This document shows, one piece after another, positions 16,706 through 41,116 of a stretch of 64,000 nt of DNA (within the stretch, counting starts at the first letter, position 1; every line of letters starts with the position of its first letter). The notes below the pieces were generated by a model. That model worked only from the letters and a program-made list of their open reading frames with translations, had not been told where the DNA came from and made no database searches. This stretch comes from Lepidodermella squamata (taxonomy: Eukaryota > Animalia > Gastrotricha), in the NCBI GenBank assembly GCA_047495785.1, contig JBLDXI010000021.1, positions 1,116,001 to 1,180,000 on the forward strand, read 5' to 3'. A program made the position numbers and the translations under genes.

Positions 16706-17326
16706 ATAACAGCGGCAACAATAACTTCAGCCTTTCGAAATTCAAAACTCAAGAAGTTTCTACTATATTCTTTTATTTTTGCCGGAAAAAATGTTGGAAA
16801 AAATTGTATTTCACGCAACGAGAAAGGCCTCTTGAACCACACGATACGGTCTGAAATTTGCGAAAAAATGGAAGATACGATCGAAATAAAAAGAACGACG
16901 ATTTCATATGAAATGGGTTAGAAATTAGAAAGTGTTTTCATCTTGGAATAAGCAAGCAGATTAACTGATATACTCGATCATAATGAACGAAAAAGAAAGA
17001 AGAGAATGAAGGCTGACTATTTATTTTGTCGCAGCTGAATTTCAGCCATTAATAACGATGGGAAAGCTAAAATGTTAAAGCAGCAGCGTTAATACACACT
17101 CTTGAATTCGAAGATGAGAAAGATGAAACTATCTAAGATATGTTCATATATTCCTTTGTTCTTTTCCCATATCAAAAAATGGCGGTATATTCCTACAAAT
17201 AACGTTCATGAACCCTGCGCAGTTTCTACAGAGTTATCAAATTCTCAAATTCAGGGATATGTCTACAGAAAATGCAATTATTCGTGCGAGTTTTTAGATG
17301 TTGAGATGATTCTGAAGTTACAAAGT

Positions 17327-19643
17327 ATGAAAATACTTGAAATCTATGCGTGGGTGATTTTTGGCCTAGTTGTTATTCAAGTCGCCGAGGTACCTATCGA
17401 ACTACAATTTAGTATCTAAAGATCCACTTTTCACGTTTTCGAATTTCAGGGAAAATTTGAGAACTGTAAAAGCGGTGTAATTACCGATATTGCGAAAATT
17501 CGGCATTATATTGCTGATTGGAGTGGAACGATTGCTGAATTGTCCACGAAATCCGAGTATGCCAGCTGGAACTGGTCAACCAACATAACAGATGCAAATG
17601 CGAAAATAAAGGTAATTTTTTTAACTCAAGATTTGTCATTTTAGCCCGAATAATTCAATCATCTATTAAGGAAGAGTCGAATAAACTTTTGGCCATTAAA
17701 AGCAAAGAGTATTGGACTATTGCGAGGTGTATCGACTGCGAGAAAGCGAATTGTTCGCAAGAAGAAAAGCGCCGACTTTGGGTTGGCTACAGCAGCATTG
17801 GACCGGCTGCTCTACCTCCTAAATCCTACGCTAACGTGAGAATATTTTAAGAGCTAATAGTCAGAATTAAAAGGCGAGCAAAAATTCGCAGCTCCAATAT
17901 TCCATCACAGTTATGCTTGGAACGCTTTCAGTGGCTCAAGTTTGTCGAGTGGATGAAAGAACCGCAAAGAAAACCTGTTTGTCAGAACCTGGTTATAGAC
18001 TTGGCGAATTTTACGAACGGAGTTTATTTCGAAATTATTTTGCAGAACTGGATGACCTTATGAGCCAATCAACTGACTATTGTACGCTGCAATGGGCTTG
18101 GGAAGGTTGGCGCAACGTAACAGGCCGGAAAATTCGAGGGTATTTCATGTCCTATGCCGTGCTATTAAATGAAGCCGCAAAGCTGAACGGCTTCAACAAT
18201 GCGAAGGAGATGTGGACTGCCGATGTTGTACACGATGATCCGACGTATTTCGAACAACTCGAGGAATCTTGGCTGAAAGTCAAGCCCCTGTATGAACAAC
18301 TGCACGCTTATGCGAGACGAAAGCTGAGAGACGTTCGGTATCCGAAATACGCAAAATTCTTTCCAGCAAGTGGGCATATTCCAGCTCATATTTTGTCGAA
18401 CATGTATGGCCAGAATTGGGGATCTCTTATCAATCTGTTGAAGCCTTATCCAGAAGCTTCTGATTTTGATCTCACTGCTTTGCTGAATCAAAACGTGGGT
18501 TCATCTCGATCTCGCTTTGCTCGGTTAATTTTAATAATTACATTCTAGAAATCAACTGTGGAATCCATTTTTCGGGAGGCTGATCGGTTCTTCCAATCGA
18601 TAGGGCTTCGTCCGATGGTAAACGATTTTTGGGCCAAGTCGGTTTTTGAGCAGAGGAATGATACCAAGATGGTGTGCCATGGATCAGCTTGGGATTTCAA
18701 TGTTCAGACTGATTTTCGGGTCAAAATTTGTGCCAAGGTTTCCTACGGGTACTATGGAACCGCTCATCACGAAATGGGTCATACTCAATACCACATGCAG
18801 TATAGCAAACAGCCGTTCGAGTTCCGCGAAGGTGCAAATGGGGGATTCCACGAGGCCATTGGCGATCTTATTGCTCTCTCGGCACTCACGCCAACTCACA
18901 TTAAAGCGATTGGCCTATTGCCAAAGGACTACAAGGAAGATAAAAGTAATTTCTTTTCCTGAACTTCGCAGGACATGTTATACATTTTTGCAGGGACTTC
19001 GCTTAGCGCACTGATGACCATGGCTCTGAGTAAAGTACCTTTATTGCCGTTCAGCTACATTGTCGATAAGTACAGATGGGCAGTTTTTGACGGCAACATC
19101 TCTTTTTCTCAGCTCAACTCTGAGTGGTGGAAGATGAAGTGCCGCTATCAAGGTTTTGTACCGCCGGTTCGTAGAACTGAAAATGACTTTGATGCCGGGT
19201 CGAAACACCACGTAGCGGGATCGATGCAGTACGATCGTTACTTTTACGCTCGTATTTTGGAGTTTCAAGCCCACCGCCATCTTTGCAGGAAGATTGGCTA
19301 TACCAAGGACTACCATCTATGCGACATCAGTGGTCACAAAGAAGAAACTTCTGCCCTGAGGGAAGCTTTGGCTTTGGGTAAATCAAGGCCTTATCCCGAT
19401 GTGCTGGAAATACTGACGGGCAGCCGCAAATTGGACTCAACTGCGATGGTCGATTATTTCAAACCTCTCTATGACTGGCTGGTCGAACAGAACAAAGGTA
19501 TTGTCGATTTTTTCCTGAAATAAAACTGGCACATTGTCTCTTGAACAGAATCAGGCGAACGTGTTGGATGGGACGATGAGTGTCCAACACATTTACCGGA
19601 ATCATCATGTGGCGATTATTCGAACGTGATACTGATGCCATAA
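17327..19643 (+). CDS. ACE: Angiotensin-converting-enzyme-like peptidase (M2), single domain, no membrane anchor; copy 1
   Basis: Signal peptide exon, WAWEGWR, GHIPAH, CHGSAWDF, zinc motif HHEMGH, EAIGD, FDAGSKHH..YDRYF; ends GDYSNVILMP*. Confidence 0.93.
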
Positions 19644-20433
19644 TTATGCAAAATGTATCGGAAAAATGCATGTGTCTTAATTAAGAGCTAACATTTTGGT
19701 TAACGCATCAACATATATAGGTTATCATACAATCGTGTTATCCTTTGGCAATTCTGTGGAATAAAAGGTGTACCTAGTTTATAATTGTTGATAGCTATAC
19801 TTATGCCATTTTTAGGGGTTCGCCGGGATGATTCTTGCGTGAACCTTGACGTCTCCGTGGACTAAACAGGGCTTGAATTTTGATTATGGTTTTCTGAAGC
19901 CGGCTTGCAGGATTTTACATCGCAAGGGCTGATGAGATGTCAGGTGGTAAGGAAGCCATACGGAAAAATACCTTCTGGACCAGATTATTCTGGCTAGTTT
20001 TGCTGCAAGTCATTTTTAGGGACGTTCGGTCTCATACTTGTTCAAGGCATCGGGCTGAGATTCACAAATCTTCAGGGCCTATTCCGCGTAGTCAGCAAGG
20101 TTGGGGCAGTGGTACCGCTTTGCTTTGAGTGCTTTGATGTGGCTCGGGCACATTTTCGCCCAAACATTCATGAAATCTGGTGTATAGGTATGTATTTCAG
20201 ACATATTTCAGGGTGCACATTTCTCTGATGTTGTGACATCGTGAGTGAGAGAAATCCAGATCTCGGTCATATTTCGTTATCATTTTTATAATGTTAGGTG
20301 CTTAATCGGTAATATAACCTGATAAGATGCGGGAAATACCCGTGAATTCGTACTCTTAATGCTCGACTAACTTGCCGACCGTTCCCAAATTATAAATTCT
20401 ATCTAGCTTTTCAACGGCTTTTATGCTGGAGTA

Positions 20434-22614
20434 ATGGTTACGCATCACTTGTCGTGGAAATTTAGTGTGCTATCCGTAATTTTCGGCTGCTTTTCGATAG
20501 TTTCAGCTAAATTGTCAATATCCCATGGTTCGATTTGCTTAACGGCAACACTATTGGGCTTTGCTGCTTTATGCACCGGCATCGCATCCGTTTTAGCCGG
20601 TTATTTGGCAGTTTTTCTCCCGATATCGCGCCTCCACAGTAGCATTCGTACCGCATTAGTTCACTTTTGCTGCAATGTCTATTTCAGCATTCAAGGTTAC
20701 TTCTACTGGCGGCGAATTTTCAGGTCAACAAATGACGTCAGGGAGGCTCAGGAGAACACTCTCAAGCGGATTTTGCGGCAAAATGCAGCGACTGAGTATG
20801 GCCAGAAAGTGAAACTTGGGGATATTAAAGACTCATCTCAGTATCGACTCAGACATCCTTTGACAAGCTATGATACTTTCCAGGAGTATATTGAAAAAAC
20901 TGCAAACGAAGGTTCTTTTTACACAGAATAGCAAGACCTCAATTTTTAAAACATTTTAATTCCAGGTGTGCAAAATATGTTGACTAGTCAGGATATTATT
21001 CAATTTTTCCTGAGTTCCGGAACCACTGGCAAAAGCAAGAAAATTCCTGGTAATGTAGTCGCAACGAATTCTCGAGGCGAGGGTCTTTACCAGTACGTAT
21101 TTTCATATTATACTTGTTACATTTTCTAAAGCTTTTTGACTACGATCCCAGCTTTCATTTCATCTCCTATTTGCTACCGACTGGTCCCTTCCTAGCACCC
21201 CTGAAATCGCTTTTAATCTCATTCAGCATCAAGCTTTCATCCACAGTGTGCGGCATTGTTATGACCCCTGTTTCTTACATACCCCGGCAGTTTCAATCTA
21301 CCGAAATATATCTGCCCCGTTCGACCCCGGATCAAGCTCGGATAGAGATTTCTGAAAGCGCCCAGACTTACTTGCACTGGCTTTTCGCCCTGTACGACAC
21401 CGAACTCTGCAGAATCGATTGCGCTTTCAGCGGCGGCCTCGTTGCGGCTCTTGAATTCCTCGCGAAAAATCACCAACAGCTTACTAAAGATATCGAATTT
21501 GGAATGATAAGTGACAGTCATTCTTTAGGAATTCCCGACGACGTAGCTGGAAGAGTCTCAGACCTAATGTGGAAAGATCCCGACAGAGCTAAGGAGATCG
21601 AAGCTGAATTCGCGAAAGGATTTCAAGGGATTGTCACTCGTCTTTGGCCTAGGGTCAACATGTGCTATGTCACTGTATCAGGAAGTCACGCCTGTGCCCT
21701 AGACCGGCTGAAGTTTTTCTTCGGACCTGATGTTCATTTCTACTCGATGATTTACGCATGTAGCGAGTGTGGCGTTATTGCTGCTAACATGGCTCATCCT
21801 CATCTCGGAAACCCTGTTTCGCTGAAACAACAGTTCACGATGCTGCCGGATGTTGGCGTCTTCTATGAATTCATTCCTATCGATGACGAAGGTGCAAAAA
21901 CTGTGGGAGAAACAGTGCTGTTGCATGAAGTTAAGGTTGGTTGCCGTTATGAGTTGGTAATCACCTGCGATGCTTCAGGGCTTTATCGCTACCGAATGGG
22001 GGATGTGTTGAAAGTCGTTGGACTCTACAACCAGTCGCCGGTCATTGAGTTTTGCTCTCGAATCGGAAGTATGCTAGACGTAGTCGGCGAGAAAACTGGC
22101 GAGGATTCTGTGTTCACAGCCCTGACGTCATGCGTCCAACACAACAAGTGGCTTGGCGCTAAATCCATCGTTAATTTCTCATCGACTGATTGCTTCTCAT
22201 TCACGAAGACGATAGAAGCCACGTCTGATAAAAGATTCGATAATATGAAAGGCGACCCTGGGTCTTTGTTCTACGTCATCTTCGTCGAACTTGAAGGGTT
22301 GGAAAGGAAGTTAACTGACGAAGAAACAACGGCTTTTGACAAAGAGCTGCAGAGATGTGCTCCGCGATATGAACATTATCGGAAAGTTGAAAGAATAACC
22401 GCGCCAAAGGTAACGTTTTGCATCTACGAAAAGCTGAATTTAATGAGATATGATTTTATTTCAGGTCTTTGTTTTGGCTCGCGGCTCCTTCGAGAAGATG
22501 AAGCAACAGTCTCTGGCCAAGTCAGGAAACGCTTCAAACCAATACAAGACACCACGATTTATCAAAGATATCGAAGCTATTCAGCTACTAACAGGCTATG
22601 CTTTTTTATATTGA
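20434..22614 (+). CDS. GHDC: GH3-domain protein (acyl-adenylating amido synthetase family), copy a
   Basis: Four exons with an N-terminal hydrophobic segment, LSSGTTGKSK, YACSE, GLYRYRMGD and C-terminal NQYKTPR. Confidence 0.92.
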
Positions 22615-23058: not shown

Positions 23059-24009
23059 ATGCCTTGCAAATCTGAACAAGAGGTCCGAATGATTTGATAT
23101 ATACAAAATTCAATAAAATTTATTTAATTGCTTAGGTCGTACAAATCAGGGAAAAGATCTACAAGGACGTCTGGCCCCTTGTTAACGATTTGGAGAATAA
23201 GCAATGGACCTTGAAGAAAGGCACTAGCAAAGAGGAAACTGGTCTCGTCTACAAGGCTAAGACTAAGAACTTGGGAACTGTTTGGAAAATCGAGGTAGCA
23301 TTTTTAAAATTTCAAAATTAATAAATACGATTATTTTCCCTTCTCCAGTTGATCTTAGACATCTCAGTTGAACAGTTCGTCGAGCGCTTCCATGTCAAAC
23401 AAGACTTCGGCTTCCTGCCTAACATGGCTGAGTTCAAGCAGTTGGAATTGAACGACAACGGAGGCGAATGGGCATGGGGGGTTACCTACACGCGCTCGCA
23501 AGGCCGAGCTGGCTTTGACGATCGGTATTTCTCTAATTTCGAAACAATTCGATGAAAAATTGATGTTTTATTCCAGAGATTTCGTCACCATGGTTTTCCA
23601 CCAAAAGATGGCTAACGGATGGGCTTTTGACATGAGCATTGCCACAGAGCACCCCGACGATCCGAAGCCCAGTAAGGTCGTGAGGTAATCCAAAATAACT
23701 TGTGAGAAAACGGAATTGATTCGGGCCTATTTGACCTAGAGGTGAGCAATTGCCCTCAGGCAGCCTGATCCGACCCCTTGCCGGTAATCCGAAGAAGTGC
23801 GAGCTCATCTGGATGAACAACATGGACATGAAGGTGATGAGAATTTGAAATCCTGAACCTTTGTTTTCTTATCTTCTTCTTCTGCTTTCTTCTAGGGCAT
23901 GTTGCCGAAGAATGTAATTAACCTCATCCTGTCGACTGTTTTGCTTGAAATCGGAGCTGCTTTCATCAAAAAGTGCAAAGAAGTCGCAGCTGAATCTGGC
24001 AACGCATGA
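23059..24009 (+). CDS. START-domain lipid-transfer protein, paralogue 2, 6 exons
   Basis: MPCKSEQE|..WKIE|LILDI..FDDR|DFVTM..EHPDDPKPSKVVR|GEQLP..MDMK|GMLPKNVI; same intron positions as paralogue 1. Confidence 0.88.
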
Positions 24010-24292: not shown

Positions 24293-27200
24293 ATGGCTAA
24301 TGTAAACGCAGTATTTTGCGGCTTGGTCGGCATCTTCAGCGGTGACGGTAAGAAAGAGACCGTTCCATTTTCTGTAAGAAACGTCAAGATCAACGCAAAT
24401 GTACGAGGATGGGCAGCTGCGACAAGCGCTGAAATAATTTACGAAAACACGTTTGAAAAGGAAGCTCTGGATGCTAGATTCGTCTTCCCAGCTACTCAGC
24501 ACTACGGCCTCTACAAATTCGAGGCAATTATCGAGGATGGAAAGCAGCCGGTTGTAGCCAAGCTGCAATCAACGCCCGAAACTCCAACAATCCAATCGTA
24601 ATTTTTGATAGTAGTTAATTTCGCAATTTTCACCTGGTTTTTTTTAAGGGGGATTGCCGATGAAATTGTGGCCGATGTGTATCGAATCCCGATCGGGAAA
24701 GTTCCGATTGGAAAGCGAGTGACTATCAAAATAGGTGTCGTGCAGCAACTTCGCCGCAAGCCGGAAAATGGGCAGCTAATTCTCGATTTCGCCCCTGTTC
24801 TACTGCCCCGGCAACTGCCTCGCTGGGATCTCAGCCCTGACGCGAATGTTGTCCGCGATAAACTCCGACTTCAGTCAAACTACGTCGCAGTTTCAGACGT
24901 AGAATATTCGCTTACTCTATCTTGTAATGTGACGCTAGGAGTTGGCGGGAAAATTGGCAAAATCTGGCTCGAAAAGTTTGTCGGCGATCTCAGCGCGGTT
25001 AAAATCGACATAACGCCTGATAATTCCGTAGCAATTTTGACGCTGAATAAAGATCGATTTCGCTCATCGACTAATATTGCAATCGCGATTTTACCTGGTG
25101 ACATCAATTTGCCAGTTGTTGAAGCCGAACCGGGAGTTGACGGCGGTGCCAATTCGTGGTACGAGAAATCAATAGCAACAGCTTGGTACGAACCTGGTAC
25201 AATCGCAGCCTCGGTTAATGCTGAAATTGATGAGGATTTACAGGCCGGGCAGGGCTACGAGTACTGGTTGATTCTTGATCGATCTGGATCCATGTTCGGG
25301 CCGAAGATCGAGGAAAGCAAGCGACTTATGCTGCTTTTTGTTAAGAGTCTTCCACTCGGTTGTAAATTCAACATTCTCGGATTCGGTTCAACTTTCGAAG
25401 TCCTCTTTAAAGACGGGTAATTTAAATTTAATTTAAATTTTCAAAAATTATATGAGACTCTGTTGATGATGCTGGCACCCTCATTTTGACGGGTGCCAAT
25501 TTTTTATTAATTAATTGAAAAAAATCGATTAATTAATTGATTTATTGATTTTTATTGGGTCCAAATATTTGCACCACTAAAATTGAAGTTCCAGCGCTAA
25601 ATTAAAGCGTCCTGGCACTAAATGTTTCAGATTCCTTGCGATTTCGGCGTTTTCGTTTTTTGATTGATACAGATGCCCTCCCTGAACCTGGGATTTTTAT
25701 TTCAGATACACGGTGCTCTATAAGCTAGGTAGAAAAATTACCGATGCTGGGTTCCAAGACGGCTGATATCGGGAAAATCACTGATTTGTAAAATCAATAC
25801 TTGGAATCGATATCGGCTCTATAGGATGAAGTATAACTCTTAAACTGACCGCTCAAAGCGCGAAATACGCGTAATATGAAGGTCTATTGGTTAGGCAAGA
25901 TTACAAAAAATGTGAGATTATAGTGAAGACTGGAAACTTGAAAAACCATATTTACGGGAAATCTAGTGCTGGAGTCTCAAATTTAGTGTTGGAACTCTAA
26001 ATTTAGGGTGCACACTTGGCACACCCATTTTTATTGATTATTGATTTTTCCAACATTTTAATTATTCGCCCAATATTTTAATATTATGTTTTAGGCTGGG
26101 TTTTCAGCTTTTTCGTTTTAGTTTTTTTCCGGCTTTTTATAATTTTAAATTTATCAATTTCAGATGTGTCGATTATGACGAGATTAACGTTGAAACTGCT
26201 CTGAAATACGCGTCGACCTTGCGAGCCAACATGGGTGGAACCAGCGTGATGGGACCGTTAAATCACATCTTCGGCCAAAAGCAAACCCCTTCGCGATGCC
26301 GATTCATCATTTTCATGACAGACGGCCAATTTGCGGAATCACTCGACAGCGTGAAACGCGTCATTATCCCGCAAACCGCAACATCCCGACTGTTCACAGT
26401 CGGCATAGGAAAAGACGTCAATCGATCAGCGCTTGAAGAATTGGCCCGAGTTGGCAGTGGAATGTCGGAATTTATCGAGGGAATCATGGATTTCCAGCCG
26501 AAAGTCATCCGTTTGATGAAAGCGATGAGCAATCAAAGTTTAGCTGGGTTCGAGCTTGACTGGAAAATTGATGGAGGCCTGGTTGATAAACGGATCCCGG
26601 TCAAACTCGCCCTTGCCTACTACTACGGCAATCCTATGACTCAAACAGTCGGTATAACTAGAACTGCCGTTAACGAGTCGCCGATTTTAGGCGAAGCCAC
26701 ATTCATTTCTTCAAATCAACCGAAACAAATCGTCAATTTCAAGTTACCATTTGGCGGTAAATCGAACGAGGACGATCTTGTCCTTCACCGACTCGCAGCT
26801 TTTCTGCAGTTGAGCGAAATGTTGGAGAATCCTAATAGGAGCAGTGAAGCGGCTAAATTCTCCGAGGCAACGGGTATTTTGTGTAAATACACGTCCTTCT
26901 CGATTCAAAGCCCTGTTGAAGCGAAATCGTTGCCGAATTTAATTTCCGACGCGACTACAACCGCCGGCTTTGACGCGAAAAATTTCGCGAAGGCTGATAT
27001 TAGGTCTGGTAAGGCTGATGACTCATCCGTGCAGCTGGCAGAGGAAGTCGTAGCGCCTATCCTATCTTTCGAAGCAATAGCCGGCCTGCAATTAGTCAAC
27101 GGATCTTGGCAATTGAATGACGCCCTGGTTAAGGTGGTTAATTCGCAGTTTTTACCAGATGTCGCCTCACTTCGAGATCGAGTCGTGAAAAGTCTAGCGA

Positions 27201-30200
27201 GTCGACTCACTGCCAGTCCTGATTTCATGCGTGACGATGACGTAATCGGCACTTTAGTTGGCTTGGCAATTCTCAGCCGGCGGTTTAACGAACGCCGAGA
27301 TCAGTGGGTCATTATCGAACGTAAAGCTCACGCATTCCTCCGAGCTCGAAAGGTGACCGGCGTCAATCGCGAGTTGATCTATTTACTGGCGACACGGTTG
27401 GACGGAGCGGCCGGGCCGACTGATGACGAACTTGAGCGGTACAACGAGCGGGTTGAAATTTTCGAACGCGTCGATCAGCATGCACTGGCTGTTTCGAATG
27501 AAAATCGCCACGATCAATTTCAGGATATTGTCACGCATTTAATCAACACCATATGGATAGGAAGTAAGCACTAGGTATTTTTTGAGTGGGAAATTTATGC
27601 GGGAGTGGCCTACTTCAGATTAGCGACATATCGATGAGAGTCATAAAATTAAGTTTTTTTTTCGTCTTATCAGGAATTTTTACTCGGCTCATATCTGAAA
27701 TTTTGAAAAAATCCTCCTTACTAAATTTTTTATTGAAATTAAATATGAGCAGCTATTTCAAATTTTACGGTAAGTTCATTGAAAAAAATGTGTAGTTTTT
27801 TGACAGCCTCTCGGGATAATAACATCGGCATTTCATTTCGTAGAGTCATTTCCGCATATAATAAAAAAAACGCATCGGACACGCTACAAATTACCGCACC
27901 GTGGGAACACATTTTTTCTAGACTTAATCAATGAATAATTTTGCTTGCATGGCCGTGTATCTGGAAATATCGGCCTACATAATATAAATAATGTAGTGTT
28001 GAAAATTCCGTCCTAATTCCATTGTGAAATATAATAATGAGGCCTCTATTCTACCCGTGGAACTATGTTTCAGGTGATTTGGAGAAAGCTCGCGCCATTT
28101 TCATCTGGTTGTCGTCGAAAGACCTGGCGAAGATGCAGTTCGACAACGCCACGCCCGGGTCGCCTGAAAGCATTTTGATGGAGCTGAAAAACGGCCGTGA
28201 AACTTACGCCCACGTCTATGAAATGCTATGTACCCGAGCCGGGTTGAATTGCGTCGCGATTTCCGGCTACGTCAAAGGCATTGGCTACCACCCGGGCATG
28301 CAGTTCGACGGCCGTGATCACCAGGGCGCGTGGAATGCGGTTAAAATCGATGGCAAATGGCGACTTGTCAACGCCAACTGGGCGGCTCGGCGGGTTAGCT
28401 CTGAAGGGCTACAGTACCAGCTGGATGAATTCTTTTTCCTAACCGACCCCCGTCAACTCATCCATACGCATTACCCTAGCGACCCGGCATGGCAGTTGCT
28501 GGATAAACCTATCAGCCTACAACAATTTGAATTACTGCCACCGGCGAAGAGTTTGTTCTTCACCCTTGACATGCGATTTATCGGCGAGACATCTCGGGCT
28601 ATTGTTAGCGCACCAAAGGGTGTAGTCACCCTGAAAATCGCCCACAACCGCCCCGAGATGACACCTCTCGTCGATTTTGATTATTCCCTGATTGACGCTA
28701 ATGAACCGCAATATTTCACGGACAACAAACGTCTCCATGGCTATGTTTTTCACGAAATTTCAGCCTCTGGCGTGGCTAGTTTTGAAATTCGACTGCCAAA
28801 ACGAGGCGAGTATCGCTTTGTTATCTTCGCCGCTGTTTCTAAAACCGGCGAGCCGTTTTCTATGATCAAAAAGGACGCGCATCAAATTTATACGGATATT
28901 TGCGAGTGGAAAATTGTCGCTGATAACGATGGCGGCGGCGTCACGTGGCCGGCATTCCCGCCGTGTTCCGGCGCCAAGTGGGGTGCGCCGCATTTCGAAA
29001 TCGCAAAGTCACGCGGTTTCAGCTTGATAAAGCCGATCGATGCGAAAATTAAAGCCGATAAAAATGGCCAAGCCGAAGTTGCCCTTGATATCGCAATCAA
29101 GCAGGAGATGTTTTTTGTCGCAAAACTGCGCTCTAATGAGGTCAGAATGTCTTTTAAAGGACGCCTTAATCGATCCTAATTTTTTTATAATTTTTATTCA
29201 AAAAATTAGTTTAATTAATTTTAAAATTAATACAGCGTTTCTCCTGCAAAGCAAAAACGGTTCTATGCCAATTGAGCAAAACGAGATTAGAGCAAAACGA
29301 CACGAGAGCAAATTTAATAATTAATTGCAGCTGTTATTTAAATAAATAAAATTTGCCCTCGTGTCGTTTTGCTCTAATCTCGTTTTGCTCAAAAGTCATT
29401 TTGCTCTAATTTCGTTTGCTCAGAAGTTGTTTTGCTCTAATTTCGTTTGCTCTAATATCGTTGCTCAAAAGCCCTTGCTCTATTTTCGTTGCTCAATTTT
29501 CGTTTGCTCAATTGGCATGGAACCGCAAAAACATAGGTTGCGGGTTCAGAGAGTGGTTCAGAAACTCTAAAATGAGAAACGAGTCACTTAAGGCCAGAAA
29601 ACTTTTAGAAAAATTCAAAAAATCACTGCTTCATGCTTAATCCGGAGAAATTTGGTCCAATCGGGTAAAATACCGAAAATTACCGAACCAGTTACTTACT
29701 ATCGGGGTTTACCGGGTTTTATCCGGTAACTTTTTTATTTCTTCGGTTAAATCGCGGGTAAAAGATGGAATATTCTCTCGATAGGTTTAACTACAAAAAA
29801 TTAATTGAATTTCCTAAAAAAAAGTTGCCAAATTAAAAAAAATTGCTGCGCCTGGAAACACGCTGTAATATAATTTAAATTAATTCTGATTTAAATTTTT
29901 ATTTTTTATTTTTTAGGCTGACGAAGAAGTTTTGTCGCGATCAATTCTGCAACGGCGAGTTGGTAACCAAGCAATTTTTACGGTATCAAGCCCAGATCGA
30001 GGCGAATTCGGCCTTGAAATATTCTGCAACCGAGTCGATCAAGCTCGTCATGAGGATGAAAATGCCGATACGTGTGCTGTTTTCCCGTTTTGCCAATTCT
30101 TAATCACCAGCGAAGTAGCTAGTGTTGCCCCGCCCCTGCCCGCATTCCCACCAAGCTACCTCGGCCCCCAGCCTGCCTTCGCGAAACTAGGCCTAGAATG

Positions 30201-30852
30201 CCTCAGCCACCCTGATCCTCTCCTAACAGTTGATGATTTATCAACCCAGCTTCAGGTGGTTTTCGGTCTGAACGAGCCGGGTAAATCGGTCCGAGCTGTC
30301 GCTAATCTCATCCGCCTAAACGATTCCGGCGATGAAGATATGACAGAATTCGTCCTGCACCAGTCGCCGTTATCTGGCGACCGTATCGCCTTTGTTTGCC
30401 GATTTCCGAAATCGGGCACCTACAAACTTGAAATCTACGCCTTGGCTAATGATGCTGTTCAAAAATCGAACTCGATCCCATGTGTCTACAACTACGTGGT
30501 TGAAGTCGGGGGCGGCGGGCATAGTCAGGACTTCGATCAAGCTGTCATACCCTTCCCGAAACAGTACTCGCAATGGCATGACGGCTGTTTCCTGATAACG
30601 CCCATCGACGCCGCGATTAAAGGCATGGCCGACTCTGTAACTATTCAAGTTTCTGTCGGCAATAACGCGAGAAGAGTTCTGGCTGTAGTAAACGACATAT
30701 CTAAAGCGTTTGAGGCTAATAGCGATGGGATCTGGGAAACAGTTGTCCCAGCTGATATGATGAAGCCTAACAACAAACTGGCTGTTATGGCCAACTACGC
30801 GGCAGATCCGCCTGGCTCGTTCGCTGTCTTGCTCGAGTATCAAATCGTTTGA
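24293..30852 (+). CDS. Fusion protein of about 1491 aa: VIT + VWA (VWA5A-like) + hillarin/KY-type transglutaminase-like domain + three Ig-like repeats
   Basis: In-frame exons 24293-24597, 24649-25416, 26164-27563, 28074-29140, 29917-30852. VIT (YENT..ARFVFP..KFEA), MIDAS DRSGS/GGT/TDG, then VDQHAL..|SDLEKARAIF, SGYVKG, AWNAVKIDGKWRLV, EFFFLTDP..THYP and three P..G.Y/F..IF/Y repeats. Confidence 0.82.
25558..26021. mobile_element. Degenerate MITE/foldback element in an intron
   Basis: Imperfect inverted repeats of about 65 bp at about 25558-25628 and 25958-26021. Confidence 0.55.
29233..29865. mobile_element. Tc1/mariner-type MITE (CAGCGT termini, TA target-site duplication); same family as 44589-45299
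   Basis: TA|CAGCGT...ACGCTG|TA; the right arm AAAGATGGAATATTCTCTCG...AAAGTTGC.AAATTAAAAAA is shared with about 45200-45299. Confidence 0.75.
29258..29525. mobile_element. Nested MITE with ~15-bp internal tandem repeats
   Basis: Terminal inverted repeat CGGTTC(T/C)ATGCCAATTGAGCAAA; flanking direct repeat (CAAAAA, or GCAAAAAC if the ends are GG/CC); TTTGCTCTAATTTCG-type units. Confidence 0.85.
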
Positions 30853-31114
30853 AAAAAATATCAACAATTAAATTAATTTGTTATTGTGTGATTGACTTCA
30901 GTATTTTCGGTGCGAATAAACTGCCATATTGATTTAAATAATTTTTGACTAATTAAAAAATGTATATTTTAAGCCTAATCAGATTAAATCGTCTTCGTAA
31001 TGGATACCCTGGATTTTTCTAGCGAATTTTGAGAGAAGCCATAAAATCGCATCAAAGCTCATGTTTTGACTAATGGTGAATATTTGCGAGTTTTCAGTTT
31101 AATAAAAACTTAAA

Positions 31115-33508
31115 ATGTACGGCTTACTTTTGAATGCATCTGTTGCCTATCTTCAACACGTCTATCCAGCGATTTACAAGGATGTATTGGAAGAACTCGG
31201 ATTTTCTGAGCAGGTATGTTTGAAAATATCCGCAAAAAGATCATGGTATTAAGGGCGATATTTTAAAGCGAGATCTGGATCAATACCAAATTTATTCGGA
31301 TAAATTATTTGGTCGCATCACGAAGCTCATGTCAGAAAAAGCTGGCTGTGCCGAGGATCAGTTGATGGAAAGTTTCGGCGAATATTTCGTCGACTATACC
31401 ATTCGCGTCGGCTACAACGATTTGCTCTTCTCGCTCGGACGGTAATAAAAAATTCGAAAAAAAATTCCTAAATTTTTTCGAACCTTTTAAGGACACTCTC
31501 GGACTTGTTCAACGAGCTCGATAATTTGGTATTTTTAAGAAAAATTACAATTTTATCAAAAAAATGTGGGGTATTTTACAGCACGAGTACATCCGATTTA
31601 CCTACCCAAAACTGAAGGCTCCTAGCTTTATTTGCCTGAACGAGTCTGTTGATGGAATAACCCTACTGTACAGAAGTCGCCGGCGTGGGTAATTTTTTAA
31701 ATAATTTTTTTGTAAATGTACAGTTTTTCTCTTCTTTCAGCTTTCAGTCCTACGTCAAAGGAATCCTGCGAGGAGTTTCGCAAAAGTACTACGCGACGTC
31801 CATAAGCATCGACATCGCATCGACTCGAGAAGTTGGCGAGCGTCTTGAAGTTGTTTACAAGTAAATTATACCGAAAAAATAGATCCGCCTTAATTTTTCC
31901 CGATCACTCTATTAGTCTTGTATTCGACAATTCAAGCCGATACGCCGCTAGCGGTGATGTCATCTTACGAGACACGTATTTCAAGAACAAGGTCATCATG
32001 GCTGATACTATTTTTGAACTCTACCCATTCCACATTTTAATCAACGATAACATGGGTATTAAATATATTTCCGTTTAATTATCACTTTTCTATCATTCGT
32101 TTTTCGAATCAGAAATCCTGTCAATTGGAAGAGGGTTAAAACAGCTTTTCCCTAAGGCGCTGCGAGAGGATTTCACGTCGCTGTTCGAGATCATCCGCCC
32201 GGATATTGAGCCGAATTTCAGAACAATCCAACACCACCTTAACAATATTTTCGAGCTCAATTGCATTTTGGCGCGTTTTGCAACGGGCGATGCGACCATG
32301 GACGCTTCGAAAGGCAAATCAGGCGGTTTGACAGTTAGTAAAACCGATCGAAGTAGCGCTGGCGATATACAGACCCAGATGACACCGGGTGGCATGCCGA
32401 ATCGATCGATGGATAGCACGAAAAGCGAAGATAATGGTAAAAAAAATCACCTCAAACCGAAAATTTATCAATTTTTCTGTTTTTTTCAGAGTTAATTTTG
32501 AAAGGTCAGATGATTTTCATTGAAGAGTGGGGCTCTGTGATGTTTGTCGGCTTTCCGCTTCTAATGATGCCTGAGCAAATGCTGAAAATTGGCCTGTATC
32601 TCAGCGACCTGAGCCTATTCGACTCGTCACGTGACCTAGTTATGGCCGCGGCTCAGGACGCCGCTGATCGGCATTTGACCCAGAAACTACTCTCAGTCAA
32701 GTCTGACATAGTCGCCGAGGCTAATCACATGGCTGAGAAGGCGAAGGAAGACTGGCAGCGGACCCACTACGCCCTACTGCCGTCGAGTGTCTCGCAGCGA
32801 TTGATGCGAGCTGAACCAGCCTATGCCATGGCTTGCATGTTCGAACACGCTAGCGTGATTTCGGTTGAAATAGTCGACGAGCGGTTGCACAGTGTTGACA
32901 AGGCGCTGTTCGGCCTCATCGAGGAGGTGCATAAAGAGGCGCAGCAAATTTGCAACAAGTACGACCTGTTCAAGGTCGATGGGCGGCTGACGGATTTCAT
33001 CATGCTAGCCGGGGTTCCGGATGTTACGAATACGCCTGAATTGCTGGCATTTCGAGCCGCGCAAATGCTAGCTAACCAATACACGGTTCGAATCGGCATT
33101 GCAACGGGCCAAGTTGCAGCGGGTGTCATCGGGACTAAGCTTTTAGCGTACAAGTAAGCTTTTTCAGTCTGATAAATCCGATTATTAACGAAGCCTTGAA
33201 AAATTTAATTATTATTTTTATCCGCTATTATAATATAGGCCATTTGGTACTGCGGTGAAGTCGAGCCGGAAATTGATGCTTATCTCTACGGTTCGTCGAA
33301 TTCTTGTTGATGAAGCCACGTGTCAGGCGTGCGCTAATGAGAAGGACGTAGAGAGCGAGCCGGGGCCTGAATCACAGGATTCGCAGGTTAATTTTTTTCT
33401 AATATTATCTTTTGAGTATTACTATCTATTTTTCAGTTAAGTCACAAGACTTACTGGATTCGAACGAGGAAAACAACAAAAGAACCTGGCTCTACAAAGA
33501 AGAAGTAA
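31115..33508 (+). CDS. Atypical soluble guanylate-cyclase-like protein (H-NOX + HNOBA + degenerate cyclase domain), many short exons
   Basis: MYGLLL start, FGEYF, LDNL|HEY proximal His, PSF, YRSRRRG|[33 protein letters not shown] and [15 protein letters not shown]. Confidence 0.9.
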
Positions 33509-33861: not shown

Positions 33862-36175
33862 TCAACAGGCCAGTATCACGTTCGAATAATCGCCACACGG
33901 TGATTCCGGTAATTTAGCTGGACACTCCTCGTCCCAGCCAATGCGCTCGCCTGAAGCTGTTTTAGATACGCCATTATTATTCGATATTTGAGGTACAAAT
34001 CGAAGGAACTTTACCTTTATTTTGCTCGACCAACCAATCATAGAGAGGCTTGAAATAATCGACTATCGCAGTTGAGTCCAACTTGCGGCTTCCCGTCAAT
34101 TTTTCCAGCACATCAGGATAAGGCTTCGATTTACCAAGAGCCATTGCTTCTCTCAGAGCAGATGTTTCGTCTTTGTGGCCACTGATGTCGCATAGATGGT
34201 AGTCCTTGGTATATCCGATTTTCCGGCAAAGATGCCGGTGCGCTTGAAACTGCAAAATGTGGGCGTAAAAGTAGCGGTCGTAAGGCACAGATGAGGCTAT
34301 GTGATATTTCGCCCCGGCATCGAAGTCATTTTCAGTCCTATGAACTGGCGGTACAAAACCTTGATATCGGCACTTCATCTTCCACCACTCAGAGTTGAGC
34401 TGTGAAAACGAAATGTTGCCGTCAAAAACTGCCCACCTGTATTTATCCATGATATAGCCGAATGGTAGGAAAGGAACTTTATCTAAAGCCATTGTCATCA
34501 ACGCATTAAGAGAAGTCTCTGCAAATAGCTAGTTGAAACGGTAAGATGCATGTTTAAGAGAAAAATCACTTTTATCTTCCTTGTAGTCCTTTGGCAATAG
34601 GCCAATCGCTTTAATATGAGTTGGCGCGAGTGCCGAGAGAGCAATAAGATCGCCAATGGCCTCGTGGAATCCCATATTAGCACCCTGACTGAACTCAACC
34701 GGTTGTTTGCTGTACTGCATGAAGTACTGTATGTGGCCCATTTCATGATGAGCAGTGTCGTAGTACTCTCTCGCAGCTTCAGCGCACATTTTGATTCGAA
34801 AATCAGTCTGGACTTTGAAATCCCACGCCGATCCATGGCACACCATCTTAGTATCATTCCTCTTCTCAAAAACCGACTTGGTCCAAAAATCTTCTACCAT
34901 CGGACGAAGGCCTATCGATTGGAAGAACCGATCAGCTCCCCGAAAAATAGATTCCACAGTTGATTTCTAGAATGTAAATATCAAAAGTAACCAAGCAAAA
35001 CGAGATAAACCTACGTTTTGTTTCAACAAAGCTGTTAAATCAAATTTAGGAGCTTCGGGATAAGGTTTTAACAGATCGATGAGATAGGTCCATTTCTGGC
35101 CATACATCTCAGACGAAACATGAGCTGGAATATGCCCGCTTGCTGGGAAGAATTTCGCGTATTTCGGATACCGAACTTCTCTCAGCTTCCTTCTCGCATA
35201 GGCGTGCAGTTGTTCATACAGGGGCTTGACGTTCAGCCAAGATTCTTCGAGTTGGTCAAAATACGTCGGATCATCGTGTACAACATCGGCAGTCCACATT
35301 TCCTTCGCATTGTTGAAGCCGTTCAGCTTTGCGGCTTCATTTAACAGCACGGCATAGGACATGAAATACCCTCTAATTTTCCGGCCGGTTTTATTACGCC
35401 AACCTTCCCAAGCCCATTGCAGGGTACAATAGTCGGTTGAGTGTTTCATAACATCGAACAAATCTGCGAAAATTGCGACAATAGAATTAAGTTCATCTGC
35501 AAAACATGTTATACCAGGCGCCAGTGGCAAACAGGTTCTTTTCGAAGATCCTCTGTCCATATGACATACTCGAGAAGAATGACTAGCCACCATAGCTCCA
35601 ACAGAATATTGGTACTGCATAGAATTTTCCTTCAACATTGAAATTTCGTCTTTCATCGGTCACTCACGTTTTCAAAGGCTTTTGCTGGTAGAGCTGCGGT
35701 TCCGATGTTGCTGTAGCCAATCCTTAGCCGTCGCCTTTCGTGTTGCGAACAATTCGCTTTCTCGCAGTCGATACATCTAGCTAAAGTCCAGTACTCTTTG
35801 TTTTTCATGGCCAACTGTTCACTCATCTCAAGCTTCAATCAATCGAGTGGCATTCAAAGTTGAAAATAATCATTTCATTTTTACCTTCACTTTCGAGTTG
35901 GCTTCTGTGATGTTAGTTGCCCAGTTCCAGCTGGCATACGCCGATTTCGTGGACAATTCAGCCATCGTTCCACTCCAGTCAGCAATATACTGCCGGATTT
36001 TCGTAATATCGGAAATAACGCCGCCTTTGCAGCTTTCATATTTCCCCTACATTTTTCGAGCAATCTCTCAATTCGGGAAAAGTTCAATTTCAGTAAAATA
36101 ACGTGGACGTACCTCTGCGATTTGAGCAAAGATAAGCCCGAAAATTGCTAATTGCATAACTGAGTTGTTGTCCAT
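33862..36175 (-). CDS. ACE: ACE-like peptidase (M2), no membrane anchor; copy 2
   Basis: Signal peptide, HHEMGH, EAIGD, FDAGAKYH..VPYDRYF; ends GDYSNVILAC*. Confidence 0.93.
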
Positions 36176-37020
36176 TTTTTAATTTGAAACAACCTAGGTA
36201 TCAAAAATCAATGCGGGAAGCGCATAATTGTCCACCGTTTAACTTTTCTGAGCGATCGTAGTCAATGCCCCTAAATCCTAAATTGAGAACACCCGTAAAA
36301 TTGTGATATTGCATGCAAAATAACTTGCTAGAATGGATAAAATTTGCTTGTAATTGCGTGGGAAAATATTACTCACATAATAGATGCTAACTTCCTCTTT
36401 TCACTGGGAATTCTTCGATCTCTAGTAACAGTCTTTAACTTGCTGGAGCAGCTGTGTTGAGAGCTTCACATCATCTTATAAGCCGCTAGTTGACATTCAG
36501 CTGCGAAAAGGCAAACAACATGACTGAATTGGAAAAATAATACAGTAGATAATTTGTTGTATGTAGGTGGTTTGGATTAGACATTCCACATGAATTGAGA
36601 TCCGCACATTTGTATTTTGTTCGGAGCCAAGCTTTCTGTGAATTTTTGCAAATAACTGCCATTTCAAAAGATGATACTTGCATTGATTGTCCCAAGAGTT
36701 TCAAATTCAAAGTTTCATGAGAAATATCAATTTCTATGTACGGTAATGGGTGCCGAATTGCTTCCGCTGCGCCAGCTTAGATTCATAGGATGAGTTGGAG
36801 TTTTTCTTTAAAAAATCATGGTCATATGCCACGGATCAAGAAAAGCGCGCTCCAAATGCGGCAACAGAGTGACAGGTTTACAGCTTAGGAACGCAGGTAT
36901 AATAAGACACATTTCTAAGCTAGCTTTTATTTGATATCATAAAATTTAAGAACAACAGCGAGTGTTTGTTCCCGAAATTGATGGGTTCTTAACAAGTTGG
37001 ATGCGCTCAGATACTAAATA

Positions 37021-37837
37021 CCGTAAGGCGGTCTTACTTCGGACAAAAACGTGTTTTTGGGGCTTAGTTTTTCGAGGTGAACGAATTTTTTGACGGGCTT
37101 TATGTCAAAAGATGCGCCTTGAAAAACTGCATATTCTAGTATCAACTCCGGTAAAAAAATAATTTTTCCCGTACAGGTATTAAAGGAAAACTGGTCCGGC
37201 TAACTTCGGACACAACTGGGGTAATTTCGGACAGCTCAATGTGAATATTTATATTGGGGTCAAAGTTCACATTAAAGCGAGATAAAACTTGTGAGCAGAT
37301 TTAAGAAAAAAAAACTTAAAAAAAACCAAAATGCATGATGAGGGATTCGAACCCTCAATATTGAATTGTGCTCCCAACGCAGATTAGTGCTGTTCTCAAT
37401 AAAATATGGAGTTTAATAAATGTCAAGGTCAATTGACATCTTTTTGAATTTCCCGTAGTTTGAAGCTGTCCGAACTTACCCGGGACAAAATTTGTTTTCT
37501 AAAGTATTTCCTGATCAAAATTTTCGTTAAAAATTGGTTTGAACATGACAGCATTACTAAATCGATGGTGCTCTATCTTTTCCGCTTCTCTCCAGCAAAA
37601 AATACCTACCTACCAAAAGTTAGCAATTTTGGGTCGCGGGACATGACTGCCAAGAAGTTGGACTATTCTTCGCATACTTATCTGTTTTCAATGTTTTTGG
37701 TGTCATTTGAAAGCCAAGACTCAGGGCTATCTTTTGCAATTTGAACGGTCTCTATATTCACCGGGGCTGAGGAGAAATTCCAGTTCAAAGTCAAAAGTGT
37801 CCGAAGTTACCCTGTCCGAAGTAAGACCGCCTTACGG
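37021..37837. mobile_element. Non-autonomous pogo/Tc1-mariner-like element
   Basis: Perfect 25-bp terminal inverted repeat CCGTAAGGCGGTCTTACTTCGGACA, TA on both sides, internal TTCGGACA subterminal repeats, no transposase. Confidence 0.92.
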
Positions 37838-37882
37838 TACTCTTGTTTTAAGAGTTTGTTTTTCTTCCTCAATGTTGAGTAC

Positions 37883-40384
37883 TTATGGGGCTAGAATAAC
37901 GTTTGTATAATCGCCACATGGTGATTCCGGTAAATTGACTGGACACTCATCGTCCCAACCAACACGTTCGCCAGACTCTGTTCAAGACAATCGTGTCAGT
38001 ATTATTTAAGGAAAGCATCAGCTATCATACCTTTGTTCTGCTCGACCAGCCAATCATAAAGAGGCTTGAAATAATCGACCATTGCAGTTGAGTCCAGCTT
38101 ACGGCTGCCCGTCAGTATTTCCAGCACTTCAGGATATGGCCTTGATCTACCCAAAGCCAAAGCTTCTCTCAGGGCAGATGTTTCGTCTTTGTGACCACTT
38201 ATATCGCACAGATGATAGTCCTTGGTATAGCCAATCTTCCGGCAAAGATGACGGTGCGTTTGAAACTGTAACATGTAAGCGTAAAAGTAGCGGTCGTAAG
38301 CCATAGATCCCGCTACGTGGTGTTTCGCCCCGGCATCAAAGTCATTTTCTGTTCTACGAACCGGTGGTATTAAGCCTTGATACCGACATTTCATCTTCCA
38401 CCACTCAGCGTTGAGCTGAGAAAACGAGATGTTGCCATCAAAAACTGACCATCTGTACTTATCAACGATGTATCCGAACGGTAGAAAAGGAACTTTATCC
38501 AAAGCCATTGTCATCAACGCGTTCAGAGAAGTCCCTGCAAAAAATTCATCACATTTATAGCAAAATTTAGGAAAAGAAATCACTTTTATCCTCCTTGTAG
38601 TCTTTTGGCAGTAGGCCAATCGCTTTAATATGAGTTGGCGTGAGTGCCGAGAGAGCAATAAGATCGCCAATGGCCTCGTGGAATCCCCCATTTGCACCCT
38701 CGCGGAACTCGAACGGCTGTTTGCTATACTGCATGTGGTATTGCGTGTGGCCCATTTCGTGATGAGCGGTGTAGTAGTACTCTCGAGAAACTTCGGCACA
38801 CATCTTGACTCGAAAATCAGTCTGAACTTTGAAATCCCAGGCCGAGGCATGGCACACCATCTTTGTGTTATTTCTCCGCTCGAAAATCGAATTTGTCCAA
38901 TATTCTTTTAACATCGGAGGAAGCCCTATCGATTGGAAGAACCGATCAGCCTCCCGGAAAATGGATTGCACAGTTGATCCCTATTGAAATGACAACATGG
39001 AATTAACTGGAACACACGAGAGATAAGGTAGGCCATTATCCCTCAGAGTTTATCTGTCAAATTGTATGAAACTTCGAAGAATAGCATGCAAATAGCGGGG
39101 AATCGCTTCTAGGCGTTGTTTTAGTATGGGTCATGCAATTGTTCCTGATTGACCACGCAATGACCTTGACTTCGTTGACTAGATTAGAGATAAACCTACG
39201 TTTTTTTTCAGCAAAGCTGTGATATCAAAGTCTGGAGCTTCCGGATATGGTTTCAGCAAATGGATGAGAGAGCCCCAATTCTGGCCATACATGTTCGACA
39301 AAATATGAGCAGGAATATGCCCGCTTGCTGGGAAGAATTTTGCGTATTTCGGATACCGAACGTCTCTCAGCTTCCTTCTCGCATAGGCGTGCAGTTGTTC
39401 ATACAGGGGTTTGACGTTCAGCCAAGATTCTTCGAGTTGTTCGAAATACGTCGGGTCATCGTGTATATTACTTGCTGTCAACAACTCCTTCGCGTTGTTG
39501 AAGCCGTCCAGTTTTGCGGCTTCGTTATACAGCAATGAATAGGCCATAAAATACCCTCTAATTTTCCGGCCGGTTTTATTACGCCAACCTTCCCAGGCCC
39601 ACTGCAGCGTACAATAGTCAGTTGATTGTCTCATGACATCGTCCAGTTCTGTAAAGAAATATCGATGATAATTAATAGCCATGTGCAAATTTCGCTAATT
39701 CATTTATATTACCTGGCTCTAGTTGCAGACAGGTTTTCTTCGTAGATGCTCTATCTACGTGACAAACTTGAGCCACTGAATGTGTTGCGAGCATTGCTCT
39801 GAGAGAATATTGGAACTGCGAATATTCGCTCGCCTTTAAAATTTGACAATTAGCTCTTGAAAGATTTCTCACGTTTGCGAAGGATTTGGAAGGTAGAGCA
39901 GCCGTTCCAATGCTGCTGTAGCCAAGCCAAAGTCGGCGCTTTTCTTCATGCGAACAATTCGCTTTCTCGCAGTCGATACACCTCGCAATACTCCAATACT
40001 CTTTGCTTTTAATGGCATAACGTTTATTCGGCGCTTCCTTCATACATAATTCAATTAATCGGGCTAAAATGATCAATCTTGATATACAACTTTACCTTCC
40101 TTATCGCATTTGCATCTGTTATATTACTTGCCCAGTTCCAGTTTGCATAAGCGGATTTCGTGGTCAGCTCAGCCATCGTTCGACTCCAATCGGCAATATA
40201 TTGCCGGATTTTCGTAATATCGGTGATAACGCCACCTTTGCAGTTCTCAAATTTACCCTGAAATTCGAAAAAACGTACAAGGTAGAGAATTTGATAGTAA
40301 ATTGCAGTTGAAAATATGTACCTCCGCAACTTGAATGACAACTAGGCCGAAAATCACCAGTGTACAGATCGCAAGTAGTTTCAT
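37883..40384 (-). CDS. ACE: ACE-like peptidase (M2), no membrane anchor; copy 3
   Basis: MKLLAICTLVIFGLVVIQVAE signal, [32 protein letters not shown]; ends GDYTNVILAP*. Confidence 0.93.
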
Positions 40385-41116
40385 ATTTAGCAAAATTATC
40401 TTAATACCTAGAAATTCGCACGAATTTTACTAGTATGTTTTACCTAAACTTCTTCCCGAATCTGATAATTTTTGGGCGAGAAACCGGAGCAGAATTATGT
40501 TCCAAAAGCTTATACTGTTTTCCTAGAATAAACTGCGAGATTCTATACATGGGAAAAGAATATAAGGGACAATGAACATCTTTGATGGTTTCATTGCTTC
40601 ATCTTTGAATTCAAAAGTGTGTATAGTTACGTTCACGACTTGCTGCATTAGCTCCGAATTTTTTACTTCCCTCATCGTTATTACAACAATAGCATAGCTG
40701 ACAATCAGCTGCGGCAAAGTAAATAGTCAGCCATTATTTTTCTTATCTCTTCTGTTTTCATTCCATATTATCGATTCTGTATTACGTCTGAAATTTCAGC
40801 CTGATCAGCAAATCTTAAGGTTAGGTAACAAGTTGATTCAAGATAAAGCTTTTTGATCCATCTCATAAAAACGTTTCTATTTTGAGCAGGTCTTCTCTCT
40901 TTTCCCGCAAATTTCAGACTGTATGGTGGTTTTATCAACCAAAAATGAATCACCTGGGTTACCTCTTGTGATGTGTGTCACTCCTCCTTCTATTGAATCA
41001 CTTTATTTCAAATGTTGGCAAAATGCTCAGAAGCGCAGTTAAAATCTTCCACGTTCAAAAAGCCACTTTAGTCTGAAAGGAAAGATAGAGTGATGACGAT
41101 TATAAGCGCTTCAAAA

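Follow-up and report, generated by a model that had tools for sequence, protein, structure and literature searches.

A gene of the gastrotrich Lepidodermella squamata fuses a VWA5A-type protein with a hillarin/KY-type module bearing a predicted inactive transglutaminase-like core

Does a single gene encode both a VIT-VWA module and a hillarin-type transglutaminase-like domain, and if so, what would its product do? The question is raised by positions 24293-30852, on the plus strand, of a 64,000-nucleotide stretch of contig JBLDXI010000021.1 (assembly GCA_047495785.1) from the gastrotrich Lepidodermella squamata. This whole stretch is referred to here as the window, and a preliminary description, made from its letters alone, proposed that the locus encodes such a chimera. 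Our analysis finds a fusion of two families within one exon. Moreover, we consider it likely that the locus is one real, expressed gene that arose from a VWA5A-type and a hillarin/KY-type gene, and that its product most probably serves as an intracellular, non-catalytic adaptor. What is new in the protein is that two known scaffold families are combined in it; it is not a new type of system.

The plus strand at 24293-30852 holds five open segments in compatible frames, which together make up a five-exon gene with a spliced coding sequence of 4476 nt, no internal stops and a protein of 1491 residues (Table 1). Each of the four introns, of 51, 747, 510 and 776 nt, starts with GT and ends with AG, and the ATG is preceded, four codons upstream, by an in-frame stop. 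From N- to C-terminus, the protein is composed of a VIT domain, a VWA domain with an intact MIDAS (its metal-ion-dependent adhesion site), a disordered linker, a helical bundle of the VWA5A type, a hinge of about seven residues, the lead-in of the KY/hillarin module, a pseudo-transglutaminase core and three Ig-like_KY domains. The two families meet within exon 3, where the VWA5A-like frame enters ELERYNERVEIFERVDQHALAV (27428-27493) without meeting a stop. That the VWA5A-like frame runs into the hillarin/KY lead-in inside one exon had already been stated in the preliminary description, and it is borne out both by the exon 3 open reading frame (ORF) and by the same ORF join in an orthologous locus, L001, which is dealt with below.

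Transcription of the gene was evaluated with two public runs, X1 and X2, which were mapped as contigs onto 24900-30899. One X1 contig (record 3, 1511 nt) covers 27185-27563 and then 28074-29139, which is the exact splice of the phase-1 intron that had been predicted at 27564-28073. Another X1 contig (record 1) joins 24902-25413 to 26163-26563, that is, exon 2 to exon 3. X1 depth is zero in 25900-26099, 27700-27899 and 29700-29899, and ranges from 0 to 7 across intron 4; in addition, the bins flanking intron 3 have depths of 10.5 and 4.25, which are the values expected for exons that end at 27563 and resume at 28074. The contig jumps at the introns and the depth pattern over them therefore identify X1 as spliced RNA. 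At the joint between exons 4 and 5 the X1 contig stops at 29139, leaving 66 letters unplaced; this joint is compatible with the depth pattern, and exon 5 is represented by RNA contigs over 30037-30895. Transcripts ending near 27574, with a separate start near 28037, had been named as the outcome that would speak for two genes; the X1 RNA is instead spliced across this interval, and since none of its contigs lies over the ATG at 28037, this position is not a separate transcript start in X1.

The N-terminal half of the protein was identified by domain profiles and by predicted structure. Exon 1 alone matches the Pfam families VIT at 26.5 bits (cut-off 26.5) and VIT_2 at 25.8 bits (cut-off 23), which is a weak match to a divergent domain, and VWA_3 extends across exons 2 and 3, with 42.9 bits on exon 3. 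In the AlphaFold2 model of exon 3, whose mean predicted local distance difference test score (pLDDT) is 68, the C-terminal half of the VWA domain, a beta-sandwich and two helices precede, in this order, a disordered linker (pLDDT 33-38). These are followed by a helical bundle at exon residues 297-412 (about 27053-27406; pLDDT 77-92), and by a short hinge of low confidence (415-419), after which more helices appear. When this model was searched with Foldseek, exon residues 2-412 aligned to residues 343-775 of the 786 residues of human VWA5A, with mouse VWA5A and Dictyostelium Vwa proteins as the next matches, whereas the alignments of ITIH and PARP4 reach only about residue 290. Because the match to VWA5A extends to residue 775 of 786, the N-terminal half represents a VWA5A-type protein that is complete to within about 11 residues of its natural end. 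Thus, the VIT-VWA module of the preliminary description is present, but it can be specified as the complete VWA5A type, with its bundle, and not the type found in PARP4 and ITIH. Sequence searches of the PDB gave no match with exon 3, and PARP4 was the sole match for the N-terminal exon of the orthologue, a weak one to the VIT domain of PARP4. Unfused VWA5A-like paralogues (P0002-P0005) end at the point where the KY lead-in begins in the window protein.

In the C-terminal half, exon 4 contains Ig-like_KY (PF23265) at 70.1 bits and Transglut_core at 22.4 bits, slightly below the cut-off of 23, and exon 5 contains two stretches of Ig-like_KY at 74.1 bits. None of the exons has a Pfam match to LIM, SH3 or Ig_CYK3_C. 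The structure search for this module was done on the orthologous protein P0001, which is 65% identical in the core, using an AlphaFold2 model of its lead-in, core and first Ig domain (pLDDT 62). Foldseek matched this model, with probability 1.00, to Drosophila Hillarin, Caenorhabditis elegans LTD-1, mouse and human KY, and both yeast Cyk3 proteins, and the top Swiss-Prot matches were Hillarin and LTD-1, with E values of 8.5e-22 and 2e-20. Since these structural alignments begin at model residues 1-5, the KY module includes the lead-in with which exon 3 ends (27428-27563). PDB matches of the module are FAP246, from the central pair of Chlamydomonas, and TglA, for which the core family profile gave values of 1.3e-13 and 2e-07, respectively.

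The residues expected to matter for function have fared differently in the two halves. The MIDAS, which had been described as intact, has its DRSGS, GGT and TDG motifs, all of them identical in the orthologue, and this complete set of residues predicts a metal-dependent binding site. For the transglutaminase-like core, the catalytic positions were set by aligning the core family profile to TglA (9crn_A), a solved transglutaminase-like protein with a Cys-His-Asp triad, together with the family alignment. This places Arg, Gly and Asn at the three positions, within the GRETYA, GAWNAV and LVNANW motifs where the preliminary description had seen the triad replaced, and with Cys, His and Asp all gone the domain is predicted to be catalytically dead. 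Inactive transglutaminase-like domains are a recognised subclass, which includes Cyk3, hillarin and LTD-1 (PMC3718969). Among unfused hillarin-type relatives (P0151-P0155 and P0158), the position of the Cys is occupied by K, Q, S or D, and the HSWNAV and LVDxxW motifs are retained. As these unfused relatives already lack the Cys, loss of the nucleophile is older than the fusion and is a trait of the family, and the loss of His and Asp is common only to the window protein and its orthologue. Therefore, the dead transglutaminase that the preliminary description had singled out is noteworthy in part: all three residues are indeed lost, but of these losses, those of His and Asp alone are specific to the clade of the fusion. 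Two of the unfused relatives, the metagenome proteins P0151 and P0152, have two complete KY modules in tandem, both without the Cys but with His and Asp, compared with the single module of the window protein.

Table 1. Features of the VWA5A-hillarin/KY fusion gene, in window positions.
Feature	Position	Strand	Remarks
Exon 1	24293..24597	+	Start codon and N-terminal part of VIT; FCGL at 24314-24325; GT donor at 24598
Exon 2	24649..25416	+	Remaining VIT and N-terminal half of VWA; RNA contig X1 record 1
Intron 2	25417..26163	+	Phase 2, within VWA; GT..AG; skipped by X1 record 1; holds a high-copy repeat
Exon 3	26164..27563	+	One continuous ORF: C-terminal half of VWA, beta-sandwich, linker, helical bundle, hinge, KY/hillarin lead-in helices
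Intron 3	27564..28073	+	Phase 1, directly before xLEKARA; RNA-confirmed
Exon 4	28074..29140	+	Pseudo-transglutaminase core (about 28076-28555) and first Ig-like_KY
Intron 4	29141..29916	+	Phase 0; GT..AG; rich in high-copy repeats
Exon 5	29917..30852	+	Second and third Ig-like_KY; C-terminus LLEYQIV, family-typical; TGA 30850-30852; aligns with the ends of L001 and unfused relatives
AATAAA, likely polyadenylation signal	30905..30910	+	Read from the sequence; about 50 nt past the TGA
MIDAS DxSxS (DRSGS)	25277-25291	+	Exon 2
MIDAS Thr (GGT)	26231-26245	+	Exon 3
MIDAS Asp (TDG)	26315-26329	+	Exon 3
GRETYA	28193-28210	+	Arg opposite the catalytic Cys; profile alignment to 9crn_A
GAWNAV	28325-28342	+	Gly opposite the catalytic His; SSWNAV in L001, HSWNAV in unfused relatives
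LVNANW	28364-28381	+	Asn opposite the catalytic Asp; LVNSNW in L001, LVDxxW in unfused relatives

The orthologue was found with exon 3 as the query of an exhaustive HMMER search, run against 1.84 billion cluster representatives, in which only one of the best 150 of 3154 matches, P0001 (query 29-462; 40% identity; 1091 aa), reaches the junction. A metagenome contig of 13 kb, L001, encodes P0001 in a single ORF of 1107 codons, which extends from the middle of the VWA domain through the whole KY module. The VIT domain and the N-terminal half of the VWA domain are encoded by the ORF immediately upstream, and one 62-nt intron (2951-3012), at the same codon and in the same phase as intron 2 of the window gene, separates the two. 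The spliced L001 protein has 1442 residues and is 42% identical overall to the window protein, and its N-terminus can be aligned with that encoded by exon 1. By segment, the pseudo-transglutaminase core is the best conserved, with 65% identity, followed by the VWA domain with 51%, the VIT region with 31% and the linker with 25%. An angiotensin-converting-enzyme (ACE)-like gene and a START-like gene stand upstream of the fusion gene both in the window and in L001, so the two loci are orthologous. The 90% cluster to which P0001 belongs has four members, on four contigs. As an observation on gene structure, the L001 gene (1983-6373) keeps one of the four introns, that within the VWA domain, and lacks introns 1, 3 and 4 of the window gene, by which it appears to be an intron-poor relative.

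Intron positions also bear on how the gene came about. Intron 2 of the window gene agrees in position and phase with an intron of an unfused VWA5A-like paralogue (L005), and is one codon off in another (L007); intron 3 has the same codon and phase as an intron of an unfused KY-type gene (L002). Each half thus carries the gene structure of its parent family, which is in keeping with two entire genes having fused, rather than with one domain exon having been shuffled. No KY-type gene, such as would correspond to the arrangement before fusion, was found beside the unfused VWA5A-like paralogues in L005-L008.

To our searches, the combination is rare. Other than the orthologue P0001/L001, no protein combining a VIT-VWA with a KY/hillarin module turned up, in agreement with the preliminary description, whose author knew of none. 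Specifically, no second protein or large cluster that joins VIT/VWA with Ig-like_KY/Transglut_core was returned by word-based searches of 5.8 billion proteins, by Atlas look-ups or by a scan of Joint Genome Institute (JGI) metagenomes. The word-based searches used P0001, a fusion alignment and a KY alignment as queries. Since just 8000 candidates are scored, they returned few matches, and they also missed most known KY proteins, so that their silence on further fusions is weak evidence. The JGI scan with the junction alignment yielded a sole locus (L004, 1-6674), which we discarded as irrelevant as it encodes a stand-alone VWA protein without a KY part. This AT-rich metagenome contig, which has dCMP-deaminase-like, large glycosyltransferase-like and TnpB/OrfB-like ORFs next to the VWA protein, could be a fragment of a giant virus or a protist.

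Both modules have been joined to other partners. Fifteen long VIT-VWA matches of the HMMER search were scanned with Pfam, and the partners encountered were UBA (P0015, P0075 and P0117), ZZ fingers (P0073), a Ras/Roc GTPase (P0036), MRF_C2, FG repeats and EF-G. The KY module occurs elsewhere with LIM in nematodes (85% of the members of a nematode hillarin-like Atlas cluster), with CH in Dreissena (P0154), with SH3 in Cyk3, or in tandem as mentioned above. As both modules are promiscuous fusion partners, the surprise of finding them together is smaller. These results support a combination that is rare and so far restricted to one lineage, and we do not claim that it is unique.

Comparison with known proteins places the two halves more precisely. 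Like VWA5A/BCSC-1 (human O00534) and the Vwa1-type proteins of Dictyostelium, the window protein has a VIT domain that starts with FCGL, a complete MIDAS in its VWA domain, a beta-sandwich, a long disordered linker and a C-terminal helical bundle. Its VIT domain is more divergent than that of VWA5A, and whereas VWA5A ends after the bundle, the window chain goes on, after about seven residues, into a KY/hillarin module of 710 residues. PARP4 and the ITIH heavy chains share with it the order of VIT and VWA but lack the bundle; ITIH proteins are secreted, and PARP4 has a PARP catalytic domain. On the C-terminal side, the lead-in helices, the transglutaminase-like core and the Ig-like_KY domains are shared with Hillarin (Drosophila Q0E908, and its leech counterpart) and with LTD-1 (G5EF51). 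Unlike these, the window protein has a whole VWA5A-type protein in the place of LIM, and has lost His and Asp as well. Vertebrate KY (kyphoscoliosis peptidase) also has a transglutaminase-like core followed by Ig-like_KY, but without a VIT-VWA part, and it retains the Cys-His-Asp triad. The best functional analogy for the dead core is Cyk3 of budding and fission yeast, where an inactive transglutaminase-like domain of the same fold is likewise joined to an unrelated N-terminal adaptor domain. In Cyk3, however, this adaptor is SH3 and the C-terminal domain is Ig_CYK3_C, and at 15% identity the likeness is one of fold only.

Can these observations be explained without a functional fusion? Fusion gene models are a common annotation artefact, and with an ATG at 28037, in the intron shortly upstream of exon 4, a guessed splice, read-through transcription or a chimeric assembly could have made two neighbouring genes look like one. 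We give practically no credence to this, as the join lies within exon 3 and not at a splice, and is covered both by X2 contigs (DNA) and by X1 contigs (RNA), while 27564-28073 is devoid of X1 RNA, which leaves the ATG outside the RNA contigs. In the orthologue, which was assembled independently, the join again falls inside one ORF; moreover, the lead-in encoded by exon 3 forms part of the KY fold. It is also conceivable that the fusion is real but that one half is a decaying passenger without a function of its own, for which the poor conservation of the VIT region (31%, at the Pfam threshold) and the additional loss of His and Asp, readable as decay, might be invoked. Against this, open frames, MIDAS residues and family motifs are kept in both halves in two species at 42% identity, and besides the linker no segment falls below 31% identity, which makes a passenger improbable.

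Two further alternatives concern what the protein does and where. The transglutaminase-like domain could still be enzymatic through other residues, given that it is the most conserved segment and that a conserved Cys lies close by, in YEMLCTRAGL. Yet both orthologues have other residues at all three triad positions, the Cys close by is found in relatives devoid of the nucleophile as well and is located inside the helix, and the closest dead domain that has been studied, that of Cyk3, works by binding (PMC3718969); residual catalysis is, consequently, extremely improbable. A secreted protein of the ITIH type, with its KY module outside the cell, might be suspected from the extracellular nature of VIT-VWA proteins such as the ITIH heavy chains and from a short hydrophobic run at the N-terminus, AVFCGLVGIF. 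This run, however, is where the VIT domain starts with its conserved FCGL, seven residues from the Met, as it is in the orthologue, and Foldseek groups the protein with VWA5A and Dictyostelium Vwa, C-terminal bundle included, with ITIH and PARP4 aligning only up to the residue given above. To our knowledge, all known KY, hillarin and Cyk3 proteins are intracellular. Together with the description of the VWA5A clade as nucleocytoplasmic (PMC10539598), this makes secretion very improbable.

We therefore favour one real and expressed fusion gene with an intracellular, non-catalytic product, while recognizing several points that weigh against it. Among the listed RNA contigs, the joints spanned directly are those of exons 2/3 and 3/4; the exon 1/2 joint, which falls outside 24900-30899, and the exon 4/5 joint are unspanned. 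The VIT match is barely at the Pfam threshold, and the structure models are of moderate confidence, with mean pLDDT values of 62 and 68. The rarity of the combination rests on the best 150 of 3154 HMMER matches and on word-prefiltered searches; exon 3 was the exhaustive query, and the KY half was covered by word-based searches. The intracellular location rests on the match of the N-terminus to the VWA5A clade. Lastly, the gene is known here from sequence, RNA contigs and predicted structures, and its function is deduced from these and from related proteins.

The surroundings of the gene are rich in duplications and repeats. An inverted segmental duplication relates 16974-22586 (+) to 33871-43359 (-), with 78-89% nucleotide identity over a block of ACE-like and GH3-like genes, and brackets a START-like gene, the fusion gene and the next downstream gene. 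This START-like gene, at 23136-23839 (+), is directly upstream of the fusion gene, a position that is conserved in L001 (414-1421), and a second START-like copy lies 18 kb upstream in the window, at 5531-6204 (+). The next downstream gene, at 31115-33508 (+), starts 260 nt beyond the stop of the fusion gene. At least five ACE-like copies (HEMGH motif, peptidase M2) are present in the window (17913-19523, 33977-35656, 38002-40076, 53444-55662 and 59161-60912), and a further ACE-like fragment is located at the edge of L001. Introns 2 and 4 of the fusion gene (25500-26100 and 29100-29900) contain very high-copy repeats, with summed X2 contig depths of 38,780 and 26,578 as compared with about 90 in the exons, and with numerous internal-deletion variants, as in families resembling miniature inverted-repeat transposable elements. 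Over 24900-30899, the contigs of X1 and X2 deviate from the window by 3-5%, with many variants common to both runs, and X2 additionally has window-identical stretches at half depth. The window-diverged contigs point to two diverged haplotypes or alleles, or to a very close strain.

How could such a protein have originated, and what would it be for? A complete VWA5A-type gene would have fused end to start with a hillarin/KY-type gene, and the latter would have shed whatever stood before its lead-in helices. In the resulting protein, the VIT-VWA half would supply a metal-dependent MIDAS binding site and the C-terminal helical bundle of VWA5A, and the KY half would supply a pseudo-transglutaminase surface and three Ig-like domains. 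Hillarin, LTD-1, KY and Cyk3 use such domains at the cell cortex, the cleavage furrow or the Z-disc. With a hinge of only some seven residues between the bundle and the KY module, it is tempting to speculate that the two halves could be coupled, such that the occupancy of one bears on the other. The cytosolic scaffold put forward in the preliminary description is plausible, and we infer an intracellular location, binding rather than catalysis, and a cytoskeletal or small-GTPase context.

Previous work on the two parent families gives this context some substance. The VWA5A clade is nucleocytoplasmic, and for the C-terminal bundle of VWA5A/Vwa1 an autoinhibitory role has been proposed, in which it docks on the vWFA domain (PMC10539598). 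At the leading edge, VWA5A associates with CDC42 and RAC1, and human VWA5A co-localises there with CDC42 and F-actin by means of its VIT domain (PMC12540739). Cyk3 binds Rho1-GDP with its inactive transglutaminase-like domain, at the cleavage furrow D-hillarin acts together with Pnut, a septin, and the patterns that LTD-1 follows are actin-like (PMC3718969). A bolder proposal, which we regard as unlikely but worth stating, is that the fusion is a 'Rosetta stone': VWA5A-type and hillarin/KY/Cyk3-type proteins would work in one pathway controlling Rho-family GTPases and the actin-septin cortex, and the fused protein would be an autoinhibited switch. In such a switch, the bundle, hinged to the pseudo-transglutaminase, would couple ligand binding at the MIDAS with binding of a GTPase or of the cytoskeleton by the dead core. 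The hints for it are by analogy, namely, the literature on Cyk3 with Rho1-GDP and on VWA5A with CDC42 and RAC1, and the one incidental match of a Ras/Roc fusion, P0036.

Both parent families are widespread and linked to disease, and their functions are obscure. They include a candidate tumour suppressor, VWA5A/BCSC-1, and a myopathy gene, KY, and Hillarin and Cyk3 take part in cytokinesis. That a transglutaminase-like core without any of its three catalytic residues is nevertheless the most conserved part of the protein supports the use of this fold as a binding surface. A conserved and expressed fusion of two complete proteins hints that these families can act on the same target or in the same complex, and provides a compact object for their study. 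If the 'Rosetta stone' proposal were true, it would offer a testable starting point for VWA5A/BCSC-1 and KY, two human proteins that are poorly understood.

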